Virus record (IMG/VR): IMGVR_UViG_3300027896_005002
Location: 1-64,000 of that record
Length of the DNA: 64,000 nucleotides
Strand: one strand, 5' to 3'
Below the pieces are notes generated by a model. That model worked only from the letters and a program-made list of their open reading frames with translations. It was not told the DNA's origin and did not search any database. The first letter of the stretch is position 1, and the number at the start of each line of letters is the position of its first letter. Of this stretch, positions 56,589-64,000 are shown piece after piece. The position numbers and the translations under genes are program-made.

Positions 56589-58499
56589 TTAAAATAATCC
56601 TTCGCTAGCTAACCTTGCAACAAAAGCTTCTGTATTATCATAAGTTTCTACATTGCCATTTTTATCAACAATATACTCTTCAAGTACAGGTTGACCATTT
56701 TCTTCTTTATAATTAGTCTTTATTGTAATATAACCATCACCTTGCTTTACAGTGTCAACTGTTGAATAACTTTTGTTTGATTCAGCAAAAGTTACCTCAG
56801 GCATTGTAATAACTTCATCAAAAATATCATCTACTACTTGAGCAATCCTTTCATTAACTGATGATTTCTTTTTCTTCTTCTTGTCTTCTTTATAATGAGG
56901 TTCTGGCTTCTTCGTTAATTTTCCACCAGGACCCCATTTTTCACCAGGTTTCTTTTTTGACATCCACCAACTATTATGAACAAAAACACCTGCATCTAAA
57001 GCAAAATTATGATACTTATCAACCGTAAAATCATAGACATCTTCTTTAACATCAAGTACTTTTGCACTAACAACTTTATGATTAATTTTTAATTGGTACT
57101 TTTTCTCTGTTTCAAAAATAAGATTATCTAAAGTACCAAAAGTTTTGATAGCAGTACAAAAATCAGGATTGTTAATTGAATGTCTATGTTCATCCCATGT
57201 ATTTTCATTAATTGGTAAATTAGCTTCAATAATTCTTTTTGTTACTTTCATTGATTTTGCTTTTACCATATTACCAAATTTAAATTTTTCATCTACATTA
57301 ATTTTAATTTGATCAACTGTACCAAAGTGTAAAATTGCTGTAGAAAAAGATGGATTACTTTTGTATCCCATATGCTCAAACCATGTATTTTCATTAATTG
57401 ACAACCCATAATCCATTATTCTTTTTGCTATCCTCAAAATTTTTGATTTTGTAATCGTGCCATCAATATTTCTTTCTCTAATAGCTTCAATTGCTTCTTC
57501 AGATTCATTATATTTTCCTAAAGCAATTTTTCCAGCTTCAGCACCTAACATTCCATTTTCCTTACAGTTTTTAATTTGCTCACCGCGATGCTTTTGCCAC
57601 AATAATTTCATATTACGTCTTCCAATAATAGACGCCATTATTCGACCTTCTTCAGACTTATTATATTCAATTAGATATTTTGCACAATCAGCTCTACGAT
57701 GAAGTATTGAATGTTCACTACCAGTAAGTAATTTGATATTATTTGGATGGTTATTATCTTTATTAAAATCGTCATGATGATTAATAAAACCTCTTGTCCA
57801 TTCTTTACCAAACTTCATCTTAGCAACAAGTCTATGAACAAAATGTTTTTTTCCATCATTCGACCAACATCGTTTATAACCGTCACAAAAACTTCCTTCA
57901 TATCTATCAAAATAAATCGGCATCAAAGATTCATTACATTGCAAATTCTGAGCTTCTTTATAAGAACCATCAATTAACATAAACTTATGATTTTTAGTAC
58001 ATCTAATTGATTGTCCATTATCAAGAATAATCTCAATAAGCTCAGCATTATTAATTGTTTTATGAAAATTAAATGCTTTTCCTACAACAATTTTATTTTG
58101 ATCAACATCAAAAGAATAAACAAATGTTTCTTTATCTATACCAAATTCATCAACTAATTGTTTTATTGATAACACTCTTCCATCCAACAGTGGTACTTTA
58201 GTATCACCAGTAAAACACAATGCCCAAGGATTTGTAATATTCTTGTGCTTTTTCATTGCACGTGTTGTTCCTCCCCATCCTGGAGGAGATACAGCTACTT
58301 TTTCGTTTGCCAATACTTCACTGGCAACACGATCAATATTTTCATTCATACTACCTCTCCTTAAACGATTCTTAAATTGTTCCTCGATTAGTTCTTTACC
58401 ATCACTCGGCAAATCAACAAATCTCTTCTCTAACTGATCATGTCCATTTTCGGCATAATCAGTTCGTTCACGTAATGGCTGTAACTTCTCGTCTAACAT
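56589..58499 (-). CDS. Intein-containing precursor of a ~221-aa probable head protein
   Basis: Exteins join as ...MKKHKNITNPWAL|SWWMSKKKPG... Confidence 0.8.
   Translation of the reverse strand: MLDEKLQPLRERTDYAENGHDQLEKRFVDLPSDGKELIEEQFKNRLRRGSMNENIDRVASEVLANEKVAVSPPGWGGTTRAMKKHKNITNPWALCFTGDTKVPLLDGRVLSIKQLVDEFGIDKETFVYSFDVDQNKIVVGKAFNFHKTINNAELIEIILDNGQSIRCTKNHKFMLIDGSYKEAQNLQCNESLMPIYFDRYEGSFCDGYKRCWSNDGKKHFVHRLVAKMKFGKEWTRGFINHHDDFNKDNNHPNNIKLLTGSEHSILHRRADCAKYLIEYNKSEEGRIMASIIGRRNMKLLWQKHRGEQIKNCKENGMLGAEAGKIALGKYNESEEAIEAIRERNIDGTITKSKILRIAKRIMDYGLSINENTWFEHMGYKSNPSFSTAILHFGTVDQIKINVDEKFKFGNMVKAKSMKVTKRIIEANLPINENTWDEHRHSINNPDFCTAIKTFGTLDNLIFETEKKYQLKINHKVVSAKVLDVKEDVYDFTVDKYHNFALDAGVFVHNSWWMSKKKPGEKWGPGGKLTKKPEPHYKEDKKKKKKSSVNERIAQVVDDIFDEVITMPEVTFAESNKSYSTVDTVKQGDGYITIKTNYKEENGQPVLEEYIVDKNGNVETYDNTEAFVARLASEGLF
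56973..58217 (-). mobile_element. Intein (415 aa) with HNH homing endonuclease
   Basis: N-terminal CFTGDTKV, block B IRCTKNHKF, C-terminal VYDFTVDKYHNFALDAGVFVHN followed by Ser+1; HNH motif VHRLVA...HHDDFNKDNN..NIKLL..SEHSILH. Confidence 0.92.
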
Positions 58500-58735
58500 T
58501 AATAAATGTTAAAGTTCTTATCATATCCACCAGTTCCAAATCCTTCTTTCGAACGATTTGTAAGCGGAGATGATACACCGTCAATAGTAGTAACACTTGA
58601 ATCTACTCGACGTGTTGTTCCAGTTGTTGTTGGCTCAATCTGAGCAAACTTCGGGTCATCAAATCTAAAAGTTTCAACTTTTGATGCAACACCTGCAACA
58701 ACAGCTTCTTTTAAAGTAGTGTTAATAGCACTCAT
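58499..58735 (-). CDS. Small hypothetical protein
   Basis: AGGAGG RBS; stop overlaps the next start. Confidence 0.65.
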   Translation of the reverse strand: MSAINTTLKEAVVAGVASKVETFRFDDPKFAQIEPTTTGTTRRVDSSVTTIDGVSSPLTNRSKEGFGTGGYDKNFNIY

Positions 58736-58880
58736 ACTGTCCTCCTAAAAAATGTTTAAGATACTGTTATTTAATTTCATTTCATTTTTAAATAGAATAA
58801 ATATTAACTCATTATTAATATAAATGAAATCAAAGTAATTTTATTTTGATAAATATGTTACTAAAAAGGAGAAATAATTA

Positions 58881-59888
58881 ATGAACCATCTAGCAACTAT
58901 TCAATCTGAATTCGTTAAAGAAGCTCGTAAGTGGAAAGATCTAACTTATGACGAACAAAAAGGCTATTTAAAAAGACATCCTAGAACAAAAAGAAAATTG
59001 ACTGCTAAACCCGATGGTTCTTCTACAAGTCAAGAATCTTCACAAGCTGCTGGATCAGACGACGAATCTACAAAAAATAAAATTCTTAACATGACATATG
59101 CAGATTTTGCTGAAAAATTGTCTGGTCAATCAAAGTCTTCTATAAAAGATAGAATTGAAAAATTACAATTCAAAATGGATAGAACACAAGCAGCAGCTGC
59201 ACGTAGAGAACAACGAGCACAAGGAGACTTAGATGGTACAGCTTTTGAAGCAGCATATGAAAGAAATCGACCACTAGAAATTGAACAAAAATTACTTAAA
59301 CATTTTCTAGAACATGGTAATAAAAAACTACCTCCAGAATTACAACAAGAATTTGATGAAGTTAACAAACACAAACAACGACATTCCGAGTATAAACAAG
59401 AACAAAAAACAGAAAAAGAAAAACATGCACATCTAATTGGTAAAAAAATTACTTGGATATCATCAAAATATCACGGTCAAGAGATGTCTGGCATTGTCAT
59501 TGGTATAAAATCTGGCCGACATGGCGGTATTATGGCAAAAACAGACACTGGTTGGAGAGTGCCTATTAGCTTAATTAAATCAACATCTGGTTCATCTAAT
59601 GTTGAAAAAAATAAAGAAAAAGTCGAACAAAATCTTGTCAAGGCAAAAGATTTAATTGGCAAAAACATCACTTGGAAATCTAAATTCACACCTGGTAAAC
59701 GACATTTTAGAAACATGCCAGGTGCATATATGATAAAACAACCACCTCCAGGCTATGATTCTGAAAAAGGCACAGCTAGCGGAAAAGTCACAGAAGCCAG
59801 AGGTTCAAAAGTCGTAGTTGGTGGTTGGAGAATACCTTTAGCACTTATTCACGAAGTTGATGGTAAAAAATTCTCAAAATGGAAATAA
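58881..59888 (+). CDS. Hypothetical protein with shared N-terminal leader/module and two SH3-like repeats
   Basis: AGGAG RBS; LIGK.ITW...SG.V...GWR(V/I)P..LI occurs twice. Confidence 0.7.
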   Translation: MNHLATIQSEFVKEARKWKDLTYDEQKGYLKRHPRTKRKLTAKPDGSSTSQESSQAAGSDDESTKNKILNMTYADFAEKLSGQSKSSIKDRIEKLQFKMDRTQAAAARREQRAQGDLDGTAFEAAYERNRPLEIEQKLLKHFLEHGNKKLPPELQQEFDEVNKHKQRHSEYKQEQKTEKEKHAHLIGKKITWISSKYHGQEMSGIVIGIKSGRHGGIMAKTDTGWRVPISLIKSTSGSSNVEKNKEKVEQNLVKAKDLIGKNITWKSKFTPGKRHFRNMPGAYMIKQPPPGYDSEKGTASGKVTEARGSKVVVGGWRIPLALIHEVDGKKFSKWK

Positions 59889-59955
59889 ATATTATACTTC
59901 GATTTCAAACATGATTAGAAAATTTTATAGATATAAATTATTGTAAGATCATTCT

Positions 59956-60300
59956 ATGAATTTGACTGTCATATCAAAATTTTGGCATGAGATAGAACAA
60001 CTACTCATAGCAGTTGAACAACATCTCGGAGTTTGTAATCATGTTTACTTTGCAAGCGGCACATTAATAATTGATAAAGTAAATAAAATAATAGATAATA
60101 ATATAATAGGAACTGGCGTATTAGGAAGTGGTATAATCGGGCTTAATCTTAATGGAAAAGGTTTTATTACTCACAATCCTGAATTACAATATTTTAAAAA
60201 CAATAGAATTTATCAACCTCAACATATTACAATATTAGTACGAAAAATTTACCTTGACATTAAAGGTGAAACTAAATTTTATAAAAAAGAAACTGAATAA
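59956..60300 (+). CDS. Hypothetical protein
   Basis: ORF only. Confidence 0.45.
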   Translation: MNLTVISKFWHEIEQLLIAVEQHLGVCNHVYFASGTLIIDKVNKIIDNNIIGTGVLGSGIIGLNLNGKGFITHNPELQYFKNNRIYQPQHITILVRKIYLDIKGETKFYKKETE

Positions 60301-60368
60301 TTCTTTTATAATTGGACAATCTTTGATTTTAAGCTTGATTATTTTAATAATAAATAAGGACTATAAAA

Positions 60369-60434
60369 ATGTTAACACTTCGACAGACACAACCGCAGCA
60401 ACCCCGTCAACCACGGAGTAATATGCTCATGTGA
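60369..60434 (+). CDS. Attenuator leader peptide MLTLRQTQPQQPRQPRSNMLM
   Basis: AAGGA RBS at 60356-60360, ATG 60369, TGA 60432-60434; 11 of 12 consecutive codons are Arg/Gln/Pro. Confidence 0.8.
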   Translation: MLTLRQTQPQQPRQPRSNMLM

Positions 60435-60494
60435 GACTGTCGAATTATAAATAAATAAAAAAGGTCTCACATGAAAATGTTGAGGCCTTTTTTT
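60379..60494 (+). promoter_or_regulatory. Ribosome-dependent transcription attenuator (1:2, 2:3 antiterminator, 3:4 terminator)
   Basis: TTCGACAG (60379-86) pairs with CTGTCGAA (60437-44); TCATGTGAGACT (60427-38) pairs with GGTCTCACATGA (60463-74); terminator hairpin at 60463-60487. Confidence 0.8.
60457..60494 (+). terminator. Intrinsic terminator of the attenuator
   Basis: GGTCTCACAT-GAAA-ATGTTGAGGCC followed by T7. Confidence 0.85.
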
Positions 60495-60516
60495 ATGACC
60501 AAAAGAAAGTGAGACA

Positions 60517-60849
60517 ATGCAAACATCTTATTTTGCAAAATCAGCAAAAGATAAAAACGCCATATCAATAGCATTGAAAAGTCCAGACTGGTTTGAAGGC
60601 AAAGAATATAAGAAGTTAGCACCAAAATATTGGTTACTTAAAAAATATAAAGACGATGGTAATGAAGAATTTTATACAATACAATACCAGAAAGAGGTCC
60701 TAGATCTATTAGATCCTAAACAGGTATATGAAGAACTAGGAGAGAATGCAATTTTATTATGTTGGGAAAAATCTGGAAAATTCTGTCACAGACGCTTAGT
60801 AGCAAAGTGGTTTAAAGAAAAATTAGGAATAGAAATTAAAGAATTATAA
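60517..60849 (+). CDS. DUF488-family protein
   Basis: TSYFA, ISIA..SP.WF, LAPK, LLCWEKSGKFCHRRLVAKW. Confidence 0.75.
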   Translation: MQTSYFAKSAKDKNAISIALKSPDWFEGKEYKKLAPKYWLLKKYKDDGNEEFYTIQYQKEVLDLLDPKQVYEELGENAILLCWEKSGKFCHRRLVAKWFKEKLGIEIKEL

Positions 60850-60857
60850 ATATTTGT

Positions 60858-60933
60858 CCAGGTGTCGCCTAGTGGTTAGGGCACTACATTTGGGATGTAG
60901 ATATCGTGCGTTCAACTCGCACCACCTGGACCA
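60858..60933 (+). tRNA. tRNA-Pro(UGG)
   Basis: Acceptor CCAGGTG/CACCTGG, anticodon arm CTACA-TT-TGG-GA-TGTAG, encoded CCA. Confidence 0.93.
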
Positions 60934-61007
60934 TCTTAATCTTAATTTTAGTGAGGCGTATGGTTTAATAATCAGTTTATAACGTTCATATCTAAAAAGG
61001 AGACGAT

Positions 61008-61985
61008 ATGAACTTAAAAACTGAACGAAATCTAACTATAGTTCAACTTCAACAATCAAAGATTACTTGTAACAAATGTAATAGATCAATTAGTAAAGCA
61101 AATTTTGATAAACATGTATGTTTAAGTGAAACTAATCCAAATATTAAAAGTATTAGAAATCTATATAATGATGGTTTATCATTACGAAAAATAATAAAAG
61201 AGGGTTTTAATGAACAATATGTTAAATTTGTACTTAAAGGTTGTAAAAGGTCTCCAAGTGAAGCTGGCAAGTTAGCACATAAAAAATATCCTGAATCTTT
61301 TAAATTATCAGAAGAAACAAAAGAAATATTAAGACAAAAACGTGTAGCTTACTTAAAACAAAATACTGGAACATCTGCATTTCAGCGACGACAAAATGGT
61401 AAAATGAGTTATGGCGAACAAAAATTACATGATTTATTTGTTAAAAATGATATATACAAAAAATATGATGTCGTAAATGAATATTGCGAACATCCATATT
61501 TTTTAGACTTTGCTTTTGTTAATGAAAAAGTAGATGTAGAATTTGATGGACATTGGCATTTTACAGAAAAACGACAACAATTTGATAAAAAACGAGATAA
61601 ATATTTACAGCAAAAAGGTTGGAGTATATATAGAATAACATATTATCAACTCGATAATTTTAATATCAATGAATTAATAAATTTTATTGGTGATGCTAAA
61701 AACAAATATTATAAATATGATTTAGTAAAATATTATGAAATTAAAAAACAAAAGCACAAAGAAAAAAAAATTAAAAAGTTACAACAAAGAGTAATAATTA
61801 ACAATAAAATTGATGCACAAAAAAATAAAAAGATACAGGATAAATTACAATTACTTTCTACAATAGATATGACAAAATTTGGTTGGGTTGAAAAAGCATC
61901 AGATTTATTAAATATAACACATACATCTGTAAGACGGTTTGTAAATAAACATTATAAAAAAGAATTTTTTAGACGAAAAAAATAA
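61008..61985 (+). CDS. Vsr/DUF559-type endonuclease, probable free-standing homing endonuclease
   Basis: SYGEQKL...YFLDFAF...VEFDGHWH...DKKRDKYLQQKGWSIYRI; NUMOD3-like LSEETKEILR. Confidence 0.8.
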   Translation: MNLKTERNLTIVQLQQSKITCNKCNRSISKANFDKHVCLSETNPNIKSIRNLYNDGLSLRKIIKEGFNEQYVKFVLKGCKRSPSEAGKLAHKKYPESFKLSEETKEILRQKRVAYLKQNTGTSAFQRRQNGKMSYGEQKLHDLFVKNDIYKKYDVVNEYCEHPYFLDFAFVNEKVDVEFDGHWHFTEKRQQFDKKRDKYLQQKGWSIYRITYYQLDNFNINELINFIGDAKNKYYKYDLVKYYEIKKQKHKEKKIKKLQQRVIINNKIDAQKNKKIQDKLQLLSTIDMTKFGWVEKASDLLNITHTSVRRFVNKHYKKEFFRRKK

Positions 61986-61990
61986 TTTAC

Positions 61991-62067
61991 GAGGGTGTCG
62001 CCTAGCGGTCTAGGGCAACGGTTTTTGAAGCCGTCATTCGGTGGTTCAAATCCATCCACCCTTGCCA
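61991..62067 (+). tRNA. tRNA-Gln(UUG)
   Basis: GAGGGTG/CACCCTT acceptor, ACGGT-TT-TTG-AA-GCCGT, TTCAAAT loop, CCA. Confidence 0.9.
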
Positions 62068-62071
62068 TTAT

Positions 62072-62150
62072 CGGAGTGTAGGCTAGACTGGTTTAGGCCA
62101 CATGCTTCGGGAGCATGTTCTCAGCAGTTCAAATCTGCTCACTCCGACCA
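62072..62150 (+). tRNA. tRNA-Pro(CGG)
   Basis: CGGAGTG/CACTCCG, CATGC-TT-CGG-GA-GCATG, CCA. Confidence 0.93.
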
Positions 62151-62154
62151 AATT

Positions 62155-62226
62155 TGGGGTGTAATTCAGTCGTAGAATGCATGTCTCTGAAACATGATGT
62201 CGTAGGTTCAACTCCTACCACCCCAG
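62155..62226 (+). tRNA. tRNA-Gln(CUG), CCA not encoded
   Basis: TGGGGTG/CACCCCA, CATGT-CT-CTG-AA-ACATG. Confidence 0.9.
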
Positions 62227-62233
62227 TAAATTC

Positions 62234-62310
62234 GGGCCTGTAGCTCAGCTGTATAGAGTGCGTGTCTTCGAAACACGATGTCGTCAGTTAAAATCTGACC
62301 AGGCCCACCA
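62234..62310 (+). tRNA. tRNA-Arg(UCG)
   Basis: GGGCCTG/CAGGCCC, CGTGT-CT-TCG-AA-ACACG, atypical T-loop TTAAAAT, CCA. Confidence 0.88.
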
Positions 62311-62323
62311 ATTAGGAGATTCC

Positions 62324-63175
62324 ATGGAAAGTATAGACAATTGTCATAATTGTACAAAATGTATTTTACTAGATAGTAAATACTGTTATAAAGATTGTAA
62401 GACTTGTAAATCAAAATTCTTATGCTTTACATTTAGTCGAAATAATGAAATTAGTATTTGCTTCGTTGACACAGCTGATAAAAATTATATTGGTACAAGG
62501 AATTCAATACAATTGGGTTTATTAGATGAAGCAATTTTTTCAACATCTCAAACTATAGAAAAATATCTGAAATCTATCTTATTATATAATAATAATGACA
62601 TCCGTAAAATGGGCGGAAGAAATGGCCATAATATTTTAGATTTGAAAAAAGAAGCACAAAAATGTTTAAATGGATTTGATTTAGATATAACTTATACTGT
62701 AGGAAAAACAAAATATTCTTTTTATGAAATAATCGACAAAAATGTTGACCGTTATGGTATAATTTCAGCACCAAACTTTCCTTTTTTATCTTTATTAGAT
62801 GATGCAGTTTTTAAAATTCGTCCTTATTGTAGAGACATAGATCTTGAAGCTTTAGTTTATAAAATAGATAAATTAGAAGTTTTGGAAATGATTCCAATTA
62901 ATAAATCAATTGGAGGTTATTTAGAAGAAATCATTAAATTTAAACCGACATCGTTTAATAATAAACTTTCATTGCAAAAAAAATGTCTTTATTGGGAAAA
63001 TAAACATACTTTAGCAAGTGGAACGCAAACAATTCCAAACATAAAAAAATTTGGTGAACATTTATATTGGCCAAAATGTTCAAAATGTTTAAATAATTGG
63101 CGAGAAAATCATTATAAAGTAACGCAAATTCAAAAAGAATATTTAAAAACTTTAGACTATAAAATGTGCCTATAG
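62324..63175 (+). CDS. HEPN-domain-like protein with Cys-rich N-terminus
   Basis: AGGAG RBS then ATG 62324; EAIFSTSQTIEKYLKSILL...GHNILDL pattern. Confidence 0.65.
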   Translation: MESIDNCHNCTKCILLDSKYCYKDCKTCKSKFLCFTFSRNNEISICFVDTADKNYIGTRNSIQLGLLDEAIFSTSQTIEKYLKSILLYNNNDIRKMGGRNGHNILDLKKEAQKCLNGFDLDITYTVGKTKYSFYEIIDKNVDRYGIISAPNFPFLSLLDDAVFKIRPYCRDIDLEALVYKIDKLEVLEMIPINKSIGGYLEEIIKFKPTSFNNKLSLQKKCLYWENKHTLASGTQTIPNIKKFGEHLYWPKCSKCLNNWRENHYKVTQIQKEYLKTLDYKMCL

Positions 63176-63242
63176 CTGAGTTGGATACAGCACCAGATTG
63201 CGAATCTGGAGGTCAGTGGTTCGAATCCACTTAGGCACACCA
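63166..63242 (+). tRNA. tRNA-Arg(GCG)
   Basis: GTGCCTA/TAGGCAC, CCAGA-TT-GCG-AA-TCTGG, TTCGAAT, CCA. Confidence 0.93.
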
Positions 63243-63302
63243 TTAATATAATAAAGCAAAATGAATGCGAATCAACAAATAATTCTCTTAAGGAGGTCTA
63301 CG

Positions 63303-63803
63303 ATGGAATGTGCTACTCTTTTACAAATATGTTCTACTCTTATACAAATATGTGCCACTATTTTTATAGGACTTCTTGCTTTAAAAATTCAGAGAAAAAT
63401 ATTAAAAGCGCATAAAGAAAAATTACACAGTGATTCTTTTGATAGAAAATATAAAATTTTTGATGAAACTATTGAATATATGCGTTCTGTCGTGAATTAT
63501 AATTGGAAAGAAAAAAAATCTAATGAATTTTTTTATGAGAATATTTTATTTAGACAGAGAACAATAACTAAAGCAAAATTTCTTTTTTCAGATGAAGTAA
63601 CAAGTTTTATGGAAAAGATTGCAAACATTGCTAGTGATTTAAACATTCTTCATGATCAAAAAGAACAACTTGGTTCAAATGTACTTGCATTTAACTCTAA
63701 AGAAACTGTAGGCATGGAAATTATAACAAAGACCAAAGAATTTCATAATCAATTTAAAATTTATCAAGAAATTTTTTCTGCTTCTTTAAAAGGCGACAGA
63801 TAA
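63303..63803 (+). CDS. Membrane-anchored hypothetical protein
   Basis: AAGGAGG precedes ATG 63303; N-terminal hydrophobic helix. Confidence 0.6.
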   Translation: MECATLLQICSTLIQICATIFIGLLALKIQRKILKAHKEKLHSDSFDRKYKIFDETIEYMRSVVNYNWKEKKSNEFFYENILFRQRTITKAKFLFSDEVTSFMEKIANIASDLNILHDQKEQLGSNVLAFNSKETVGMEIITKTKEFHNQFKIYQEIFSASLKGDR

Positions 63804-63820
63804 TTAGTTCTTTGTTTAAA

Positions 63821-63849
63821 CGTAGGTTCAAATCCTACCTGGGACACCA
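63821..63849 (+). pseudogene. Orphan tRNA 3' fragment (T-arm, acceptor strand, CCA)
   Basis: C-GTAGG-TTCAAAT-CCTAC-CTGGGAC-A-CCA, with no complementary GTCCCAG 5' strand upstream. Confidence 0.75.
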
Positions 63850-63851
63850 TT

Positions 63852-64000
63852 ATGAAAAACACTGGCTTTTCTGAAATAACTACTGAACGACTTTACTATA
63901 ATAGTCAAGATCCTTGGTACATGGAAGTCGCTATTACTGGTCGTTGCAATTTTTCATGTAAATATTGCAATAGATTCAATAATGATATTGATCTTGCAAA
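63852..64000 (+). CDS. Radical SAM protein, 5' part (runs off window)
   Basis: MKNTGFSEITTERLYYNSQDPWYMEVAITGRCNFSCKYCNRF contains CxxxCxxC. Confidence 0.8.
   Translation, partial: MKNTGFSEITTERLYYNSQDPWYMEVAITGRCNFSCKYCNRFNNDIDLA

Follow-up and report, generated by a model that had tools for sequence, protein, structure and literature searches.

A leader ORF matching its downstream tRNA genes, and a putative attenuator, in a 416-kb phage

How might a phage adjust the synthesis of its own tRNAs to the need for them? The question is raised by a locus in a 416-kb phage (IMG/VR record IMGVR_UViG_3300027896_005002), in which a 21-codon open reading frame, built from the codons that six downstream tRNAs read, precedes a terminator that can apparently be switched. 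We analysed positions 1 to 64,000 of this record (64,000 nt, hereafter the window). A preliminary description had proposed that the locus is a leader-peptide attenuator, which senses the decoding of Arg, Gln and Pro codons and gates the tRNA array. Our analysis confirms the sequence features on which this proposal was based, and comparison with related phages supports its interpretation, although, in the absence of experimental data, both the rise of read-through upon ribosome stalling and the physiological trigger (host tRNA depletion, anticodon nucleases or plain supply homeostasis) remain inferred.

Organization of the locus

The elements of the locus, all on the plus strand, are as follows.

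60313-60351 (+), candidate sigma-70-like promoter(s), TGGACA-18-GATTAT and TTGATT-17-AATAAT
60357-60361 (+), Shine-Dalgarno (SD)-like AAGGA, 7 nt before the ATG (-12 to -8)
60369-60434 (+), leader ORF, ATG to TGA, 21 sense codons, peptide MLTLRQTQPQQPRQPRSNMLM
60379-60391 (+), region 1, 5' arm of the enclosing hairpin P1
60381-60416 (+), control run of 12 codons, of which 11 are Arg(CGN)/Gln/Pro codons, with 8 different codons
60427-60444 (+), region 2, containing the stop codon; 60427-38 pairs with region 3 (antiterminator) and 60430-44 pairs with region 1
60457-60494 (+), intrinsic terminator, with stem, GAAA loop (60473-76) and T7 (60488-60494)
60463-60474 (+), region 3, 5' arm of the terminator and alternative partner of region 2
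60517-60849 (+), DUF488-N3a protein gene, the first gene after the attenuator
60858-60933 (+), tRNA-Pro (TGG)
61008-61985 (+), DUF559 endonuclease-like ORF inside the array, probably a homing endonuclease
61991-62310 (+), tRNA-Gln (TTG), tRNA-Pro (CGG), tRNA-Gln (CTG) and tRNA-Arg (TCG)
62324-63175 (+), 283-aa ORF of unknown function, the end of which overlaps the next tRNA by 10 nt
63166-63242 (+), tRNA-Arg (GCG)
63261-63803 (+), 180-aa ORF of unknown function
63822-63849 (+), 3' remnant of a tRNA (T arm, acceptor 3' strand, CCA)
63852-64000 (+), start of a radical-SAM gene

The promoter candidates are consensus matches at background frequency and are therefore weak on their own. However, relatives possess better ones at the same place, namely TTTACA-17-TATATT in L023/L096 and TTGACA-17-TATATT in L200 (L-numbers designate the loci and phage contigs compared in this study). 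The codon run reads exactly as given in the preliminary description and makes use of rare codons (CGG 0.9, CCC 1.6 and CCG 4.2 per 1000).

The minimum-free-energy fold of 60340-60500 contains the helix 60379-86 with 60437-44, continued by CACA/TGTG and inner pairs, as well as the terminator hairpin at 60457-60493. The energy of this fold is -40.8 kcal/mol (z = -5.4), and 0 of 200 shuffled sequences fold as well. The alternative helix, 60427-38 with 60463-74, consists of 12 bp (11 Watson-Crick pairs plus one G-U) and contains the TGA stop codon at 60432-34. It can be read directly from the sequence and was recovered by a duplex-folding calculation at -19.6 kcal/mol (p = 0.0005 against 2000 random windows of the same sequence). 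This helix is crossed by the pairing of region 1 with region 2 and is mutually exclusive with the terminator.

Both ARAGORN and Rfam identify six tRNAs, all of which are Pro, Gln or Arg tRNAs, and each has a cognate codon in the leader. No further tRNAs were found up to contig position 66982, and in the tRNA remnant only the generic T arm matches other tRNAs. Homologues of the DUF488 gene lie within 4 kb of the leader in all close relatives, and homologues of the DUF559 ORF sit inside the arrays of L133 and L004. The 283-aa ORF yielded only a weak HEPN hit, below the cut-off. On the contig, the radical-SAM gene is followed on the same strand by a PTH2 peptidyl-tRNA hydrolase gene (contig 64733-65122), after which the strand flips.

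The module recurs in other phage lineages

In order to verify whether this arrangement is maintained, we searched related phages for leader ORF and terminator units preceding tRNA clusters, a test suggested in the preliminary description. The same module was found in eight other phage contigs, representing five further lineages: L018/L133/L019, L023/L096, L197, L199 and L200 (the latter also in L291/L292). Each possesses a start codon, an ORF of 17-22 codons, a terminator and an alternative helix that is either kept by compensatory changes or rebuilt from other sequence. A comparable AAGG, AAGGA or AAGGAG lies 7-13 nt before the start in 8 of the 9 other leaders compared and in L212. The exception, L200, looks leaderless and is located directly behind its TTGACA-17-TATATT promoter. 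Folding against shuffled sequences was run for six leader regions, and each folds better than its shuffles, with z from -3.3 to -6.8.

Notably, an alternative helix between the stop-codon region and the 5' arm of the terminator is present in all nine leaders, with energies of -13.7 to -26.7 kcal/mol and p <= 0.005 against random windows in each case. On the alignment of relatives, 86% of the cells of this helix are paired and 4 pairs change on both sides; 0 of 500 shuffles reach the observed covariation score, and slid controls give only 25-49% paired. In L023/L096, L197, L199 and L200 the helix is built from unrelated sequence at the equivalent place. For the terminator, 96% of cells are paired across relatives and 3 pairs change on both sides. 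The column-wise count for the pairing of regions 1 and 2 is poor (65%), because the 5' part of the alignment is offset, but each relative folds an equivalent enclosing hairpin.

The position of the tRNA genes is also informative. In five of the eight contigs the tRNA starts only 15-40 nt after the T-run. In L018, L019, L133, L023, L096, L132 and L212 the first tRNA starts 11-18 nt after the T-run, and in L200 about 40 nt after it, which leaves no room for a separate promoter. Thus, in most relatives the terminator must be read through for the tRNAs to be made. In the window, by contrast, 363 nt and a protein gene separate the terminator from the first tRNA and ORFs interrupt the array, so that internal promoters cannot be excluded; L199 has a TATAAT box just before its first tRNA.

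These observations bear on the possibility that we are dealing with an ordinary constitutive terminator, which ends the upstream operon (58881-60300), the short ORF and the alternative helix being due to chance. AT-rich intergenic DNA indeed yields many short ORFs, a simple terminator scan did not rate this site, and the terminator is kept in equilibrium folds of the full-length leader (see below). Nevertheless, the start codon, frame, length, codon composition, terminator and alternative helix recur in five other lineages with compensatory changes, the codon enrichment is strong (p down to 4e-11), and in the seven relatives in which tRNAs start 11-18 nt after the T-run a constitutive terminator would silence them. 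We therefore consider this explanation very unlikely.

Ribosome position and the predicted fold

To model the switch, we folded transcripts truncated before region 4 with a 30-nt ribosome mask. In all ten leaders, the 5' arm of the terminator stays sequestered while the A site is on any codon up to the end of the control run, and is released when the ribosome sits on the last ~5 codons or the stop codon. In most leaders the antiterminator forms in truncated transcripts even without a ribosome; the role of hairpin P1 and the untranslated state are unclear. Furthermore, equilibrium folding of the full-length leader keeps the terminator, and the switch must therefore be kinetic.

Leader codons follow the tRNA array

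In the window, 11 of 20 leader codons match the amino acids of the array against a background of 0.105 (p = 1e-6). Across leaders the amino-acid match is 47-74% against backgrounds of 6-13%, with p from 4e-4 to 4e-11. The numbers of tRNAs with a cognate codon in their own leader are 6/6, 4/4, 4/4, 8/8, 2/2, 7/9, 3/3 and 7/7. The chance that a random ORF covers as many is 3e-4 for the window and 5e-5 or less for L019, the latter being the resolution of the simulation.

Strikingly, the codon set changes together with the tRNA set. P/Q/R leaders precede Pro/Gln/Arg arrays, whereas L023/L096 have a P/Q run and only Pro and Gln tRNAs. The L200 leader is N/P/Q with no Arg codon, and its array comprises Asn x2, Gln x2 and Pro x3, with no Arg tRNA in the next 10 kb. 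AGG occurs in the leaders of the four arrays that hold tRNA-Arg(CCT) and is absent from the window, L199 and L200, which lack that tRNA. A separate leader type, found in two phages (L132 and L212), has consecutive GCR ACA ATT AGA ATG codons (Ala-Thr-Ile-Arg-Met) and precedes tRNAs with anticodons TGC, TGT, GAT, TCT and CAT. The leader-by-array matrix is block-diagonal. The match is nevertheless imperfect: L023/L096 leaders carry AGG and AGA, but no Arg tRNA was found within 3.9 kb, while the L197 leader covers 6 of its 8 distinct anticodons (7 of 9 tRNA genes) and has two Asn codons without a tRNA-Asn. It should also be noted that only about six independent lineages exist and that the P/Q/R leaders share ancestry, so the codon-set changes amount to few events. 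The peptide sequence drifts, with only 3 of 23 alignment columns invariant across the five peptides, while its composition is kept and rare synonymous codons are used. This points to the codons, and not the peptide, as the selected feature.

An attenuator might alternatively report general translation status or amino-acid starvation rather than the supply of particular tRNAs. Gln, Pro and Arg all derive from glutamate, and the P/Q/R set equals the glutamate family; classical attenuators sense charged tRNA, and amino-acid supply would thus also be read. Moreover, in truncated folds the terminator needs a ribosome at the end of the ORF, so any slowing of translation gives read-through. However, the N/P/Q set of L200 and the A/T/I/R/M set of L132 and L212 are not biosynthetic families, yet they equal the tRNA genes downstream. 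In addition, synonymous codons are spread so that each isoacceptor has a codon, and making more tRNA does not relieve amino-acid starvation. This reading is unlikely, albeit less so than the other alternatives.

Another possibility is that the ORF encodes a functional Q/P/R-rich micropeptide, or that the terminated ~130-nt leader RNA acts in trans as a small RNA, its link to the tRNAs being incidental. Leader peptides and attenuator RNAs with trans functions do exist, as exemplified by peTrpL and rnTrpL in Sinorhizobium (PMC7298713, PMC7968998), and the leader region is strongly structured. The poor conservation of the peptide and the presence of a non-homologous leader type of another composition before another tRNA set make this improbable, although such a role would not exclude attenuation. 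Similarly, stalling could be caused by the nascent peptide itself, through a proline-rich arrest sequence with EF-P dependence, since proline codons slow peptide-bond formation and the proline-codon leaders mgtL and mgtP are known sensors (PMC3641672). Yet no leader has consecutive prolines, the A-T-I-R-M type has no proline in its control run, and the peptide sequence is not conserved; we regard this explanation as very doubtful.

Comparison with known regulatory systems

The locus resembles the multivalent leader-peptide attenuators of amino-acid operons (thr, sensing Thr and Ile; ilvGMEDA and ilvBN, sensing Ile/Leu/Val; also trp, his, leu and pheA) in having a short SD-led ORF with a run of control codons, regions 1-4 forming a pause/anti-antiterminator, an antiterminator and a terminator with a U-run, a stop codon at or in region 2, and several amino acids sensed by one leader. 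It differs from them in that it is carried by a phage, that each downstream isoacceptor is represented among the codons, and that the output would be tRNA genes, not biosynthetic enzymes. The genes downstream are tRNAs, a DUF488 gene, an endonuclease-like ORF, unknown ORFs, a radical-SAM gene and PTH2. There is no sequence or Rfam relationship either: a covariance-model search of 58000-64000 at E <= 1 against the curated families (His, Thr, Trp, Leu and Phe leaders, T-box and others) returned only tRNAs and chance hits overlapping them.

The pheST attenuator (pheM leader) likewise controls a component of the translation apparatus that serves the very codons in the leader, giving feedback on decoding, but it regulates an aminoacyl-tRNA synthetase, senses one amino acid and is chromosomal, whereas here the tRNAs themselves would be regulated, for up to eight isoacceptors at once. 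In T-box riboswitches, which control translation-related genes, terminator/antiterminator decisions are also set by the state of a particular tRNA; these, however, bind uncharged tRNA directly through a specifier codon and need no ribosome or ORF, while the present element probably has a translated leader instead. In the mgtL and mgtP leaders of Salmonella mgtA/mgtCBR (PMC3641672), the translation speed of short ORFs with Pro codons selects between alternative stem-loops, but those leaders control Mg2+ transport and virulence genes, respond to proline or osmotic state and have no link to tRNA genes. Finally, phage tRNA genes have been considered as codon compensation or counter-defence, replacing or supplementing host tRNAs (PMC10264068, PMC11464382), and, interestingly, the neighbourhood in relatives holds tRNA repair genes (Rnl1, RtcB, a PNK-like kinase, Thg1 and a CCA-adding enzyme). 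Those studies concern what the tRNAs do, and our literature searches revealed no earlier description of a sensing element that switches such arrays on demand.

A putative feedback sensor of decoding capacity

Taken together, the locus is most likely a trp/his/thr-type ribosome-mediated transcription attenuator, the regulated product of which is the phage's own tRNA array. We hold this explanation with fairly high confidence, although translation of the ORF, its coupling to transcription and the direction of the switch in vivo are inferred, there being no transcription, translation or tRNA-level data and the host being unknown. In the proposed sequence of events, transcription starts just upstream of 60355 and a ribosome loads on the leader. 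If the ribosome is slowed on any CGN, CAR or CCN codon of the control run, it covers region 1 and leaves region 2 free to pair with region 3 before region 4 is made. The terminator then cannot form, and RNA polymerase runs on into the DUF488 gene, the six tRNAs and probably the genes beyond, including the peptidyl-tRNA hydrolase. If, conversely, all these codons are read quickly, the ribosome reaches the last codons and the TGA and masks region 2, so that the terminator forms and transcription stops. The phage thus probably makes these tRNAs only when ribosomes stall on the corresponding codons. Because the leader holds at least one cognate codon for every tRNA in the array, the unit would act as an OR-gate sensor of decoding capacity, in which the tRNAs feed back negatively on their own synthesis.

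Architecture of the leader and its genomic setting

The contig IMGVR_UViG_3300027896_005002 (416,029 bp, also recorded as Ga0209777_10000009) is viral, and its first 64 kb (G+C content 31%) encode, among others, gyrase A, a topoisomerase, glycosyltransferases and an intein-bearing protein; at 56589-58499 (-), a 636-aa protein is interrupted by an intein with an HNH endonuclease domain. A blastn search in distant mode revealed no close relative of the region among GenBank phages. All the elements noted in the preliminary description, namely a short ORF with a run of Arg/Gln/Pro codons, mutually exclusive helices, a GAAA-capped terminator and a downstream array of Pro, Gln and Arg tRNAs, are indeed present:

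60369-60434, ORF of 21 sense codons with a TGA stop, preceded by AAGGA 7 nt upstream of the start; codons 5-16 read R Q T Q P Q Q P R Q P R
60379-86 with 60437-44, followed by CACA/TGTG and inner pairs, enclosing hairpin
60427-38 with 60463-74, alternative 12-bp helix containing the stop codon
60457-60493, terminator with a GAAA loop, and T7
60517-60849, DUF488-N3a gene
61008-61985, DUF559 endonuclease-like ORF inside the tRNA array
63166-63242, tRNA-Arg with anticodon GCG
63822-63849, orphan 3' part of a tRNA (T arm, acceptor strand, CCA)
63852 onward, radical-SAM gene

Folding of the region 60340-60500 yields the enclosing hairpin and the terminator with an energy of -40.8 kcal/mol (z = -5.4), and none of 200 shuffles does as well. 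Notably, the alternative helix scores -19.6 kcal/mol (p = 0.0005 against random windows) and is more stable than the terminator stem alone (-14.8). The leader is followed by six tRNAs (Pro-TGG, Gln-TTG, Pro-CGG, Gln-CTG, Arg-TCG and Arg-GCG), and none were found in the next 3 kb of the contig. No Rfam family other than tRNA matches. The orphan tRNA part lies directly after a 180-aa ORF and lacks its 5' part, so that an insertion or deletion may have destroyed a seventh tRNA; it could not be assigned to an isoacceptor. Peculiarly, the tRNA-Arg at 63166-63242 carries the anticodon GCG rather than the usual bacterial ACG (inosine).

Related leaders in other phage contigs

The DUF488-N3a gene that follows the terminator was used as an anchor to retrieve related loci (designated by L numbers). 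A frame-aware scan of these loci for R/Q/P-rich windows picked out two short ORFs just upstream of tRNA-Pro/tRNA-Gln pairs, in L002 and L004. DNA patterns taken from those, followed by protein homologues of DUF488 and their contigs, brought the total to eight further contigs with the same module: L018 (= L002, L211), L133 and L019 (= L132); L023 (= L004, L214) and L096; L197; L199; and L200 (= L291; identical in L292). Each has a start codon, an SD-like site in all but L200, an ORF of 17-22 codons with a run of the control codons, an enclosing hairpin and a strong terminator. In L200 (8691-8862), the leader sits directly behind a TTGACA-17-TATATT promoter whose -10 box ends 6 nt before the ATG, so the leader mRNA may be leaderless.

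Other searches were less productive. The upstream 114-aa ORF and the endonuclease-like ORF retrieved only the contig under study, an alignment of leader peptides returned 599 pattern hits, none confirmable for so short a query, and two relaxed DNA patterns in viral contigs gave only the four known members plus chance hits. A scan of bacterial and archaeal genomes gave one hit, in a Phycisphaerales MAG with no tRNA nearby, whereas a P/Q/R-rich hit next to tRNA-Pro in L236, another retrieved locus, proved to be an off-frame artefact inside a normal gene. Short ORF plus terminator units also precede two large mixed arrays of 22 and 35 tRNAs (L213:3560-3743; L247:1159-1387), but these arrays cover nearly all amino acids and codon matching cannot be assessed there.

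A DUF488-N3a gene always lies within 4 kb of the leader, upstream or downstream, and in L004 (4001-4933) and L096 (9043-9972) it is fused to an Ogg-type HhH DNA glycosylase domain. DUF559 endonuclease-like ORFs (35-57% identical) sit inside the tRNA arrays of three lineages (61008-61985 in the window; L133:452-1612; L004:2573-3865) and look like homing endonucleases that target tRNA clusters. In L133 (1676-1757 and upstream), the tRNA-Pro after the leader appears to be interrupted: its first 29 bases are 90% identical (26 of 29) to the start of the L018 tRNA, unrelated sequence then follows, and ARAGORN calls an 82-nt gene further on, which may reflect an intron or an insertion. Phage-encoded tmRNA genes were found in L019:7230-7641 (= L132:11270-11681), where the gene lies about 4 kb downstream of the tRNA array, and in L010:6564-6922. 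tRNAs with the anticodon CTA (amber suppressor) occur at L291:13542, where one ends the same-strand unit, and at L234:3296 in another DUF488-bearing huge-phage contig, the latter hinting at stop-codon recoding.

Conservation of the alternative helices

On the alignment of the six closest sequences, the terminator is 96% paired, with 3 pairs changed on both sides, and the antiterminator is 86% paired, with 4 such pairs; 0 of 500 shuffles reach the covariation score of the antiterminator, and slid registers give 25-49% pairing. The terminator's 5' arm (region 3) therefore co-varies with both of its partners. Strikingly, in L023/L096, L197, L199 and L200 the sequences differ, yet a helix again joins the stop-codon neighbourhood to the terminator's 5' arm, with energies of -13.7 to -26.7 kcal/mol and p <= 0.005 in each case.

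Equilibrium folds of the full-length leader nearly always keep the terminator, wherever a ribosome is placed, as expected if the switch is kinetic, and such folds cannot test a kinetic switch. We therefore folded transcripts ending before region 4, the partner of region 3 in the terminator, with a 30-nt ribosome footprint. In these folds the terminator's 5' arm stays sequestered while the A site is on any codon up to the end of the control run, and is freed once the ribosome sits on the last few codons or the stop. The switch point coincides with the end of the control run in all ten leaders. In most leaders, however, the antiterminator also forms without any ribosome, so termination seems to need a ribosome that has completed the ORF.

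Leader codons follow the anticodons of the array

Between 47 and 74% of leader codons specify amino acids of the downstream array, against backgrounds of 6-13% (p from 4e-4 to 4e-11). Nearly every tRNA has a cognate codon in its own leader, 6/6 in the window and 8/8 in L019, and the chance of covering as many is 3e-4 for the window and 5e-5 or less for L019. The leader of the window uses eight different codons, several of them rare in the phage (CGG 0.9, CCC 1.6 and CCG 4.2 per 1000). Peptide sequences drift while composition is kept. Stalling caused by the nascent peptide itself is unlikely, since there are no consecutive prolines and the peptides are not conserved.

The codon set changes together with the tRNA set. 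Arrays behind P/Q/R leaders are purely Pro/Gln/Arg, with up to ten tRNAs in L197, one of which ARAGORN could not assign. Only Pro and Gln tRNAs follow the P/Q run of L023/L096, whereas Asn x2, Gln x2 and Pro x3, with no Arg tRNA for 10 kb, follow the N/P/Q leader of L200. The correspondence is nevertheless imperfect and rests on few independent lineages: the L023/L096 leaders contain AGG/AGA without an Arg tRNA, and 6 of 8 distinct anticodons (7 of 9 tRNA genes) are covered in L197. The anticodon GCG of the tRNA-Arg in the window is shared by L133, while L018, L019, L197 and L199 have ACG. ARAGORN also reports tRNAs with eight-base anticodon loops (cttg, cttt) that it cannot assign, in L003:1936-2085 (= L212:7936-8085) and L197:5779-5853, one of them inside the P/Q/R array of L197.

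Interestingly, a second, unrelated leader type was found in L132 (1661-1820) and in the related L212 (2272-2440). Here, a short ORF carries the consecutive codons GCR ACA ATT AGA ATG (Ala-Thr-Ile-Arg-Met) within its last 8-9 sense codons and is followed by three hairpin arms (A:B or B:C plus a T-run). tRNA-Met (CAT) begins 11 nt later, followed by Thr-TGT and Ile-GAT and, further downstream, by Ala-TGC and Arg-TCT. The leader-by-array matrix is block-diagonal. L132 carries both module types 4.7 kb apart, while L212 and L133, two separate contigs with 99-100% identical shared proteins, carry one type each. The possibility that the P/Q/R set reflects the glutamate family, from which Gln, Pro and Arg all derive, is not supported, because the other sets are not biosynthetic families.

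Position of the terminator relative to the tRNA genes

In L018, L019, L133, L023, L096, L132 and L212 the first tRNA starts 11-18 nt after the T-run, and in L200 about 40 nt after it; these tRNAs can only be transcribed through the terminator. In the window the DUF488 gene lies in between, as does a 119-aa ORF in L197. No promoter-like site was found between 60495 and 60857, although internal promoters are possible in the window and in L199. The same-strand unit that starts with the attenuator runs on through the radical-SAM gene to a PTH2-type peptidyl-tRNA hydrolase gene (contig 64733-65122; L191:8726-9115), which is its last gene and lies just outside the window. This enzyme recycles tRNA from stalled translation, which fits the theme.

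Possible function and implications

In the absence of experimental data, the best reading of these observations is a trp/his/thr-type attenuator whose output is the tRNA array, giving negative feedback on decoding capacity for the listed codons. The trigger could be host tRNA cleavage, host tRNA decay or simple supply control. DUF488 neighbourhoods in related phages (L192, L193, L199, L202 and L204) hold tRNA repair and maturation genes, namely a T4 Rnl1-type ligase, RtcB, a PNK-like kinase, Thg1, a CCA-adding enzyme and NUDIX, and the repair genes make damage to tRNAs a reasonable guess.

In textbook cases tRNA genes are controlled at the promoter (growth rate, stringent response). Full-text literature searches, in which most subscription journals were not represented, found no leader-peptide control of tRNA genes in phages or bacteria, and at pheU and pheV of E. 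coli MG1655 we saw only a promoter directly before each tRNA. The class of mechanism is known; what appears new is the output, the one-codon-per-tRNA design and the phage setting.

A further possibility, which we regard as only slightly more likely than not, is that in a group of huge phages tRNA genes are organised as self-sensing modules, each array being headed by a short 'checklist' ORF that contains a codon for every tRNA in that array and is coupled to a terminator switch, with one genome able to carry several such modules with different codon sets. Each array would then be made only when decoding of one of its codons fails, for instance after host tRNA cleavage by anticodon nucleases or host tRNA decay during infection. 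This would be a new regulatory logic for tRNA genes, autoregulation through the ribosome.

If confirmed, the arrangement would offer a compact, programmable codon or tRNA sensor for synthetic biology. It would also show that phages can measure, codon by codon, whether the cell can still translate, and top up only the tRNAs that are missing. Finally, it would give a direct handle on the long-standing question of why phages carry tRNAs (codon compensation versus escape from tRNA-targeting defence), as the leader would tell which codons the phage expects to become limiting, and when.
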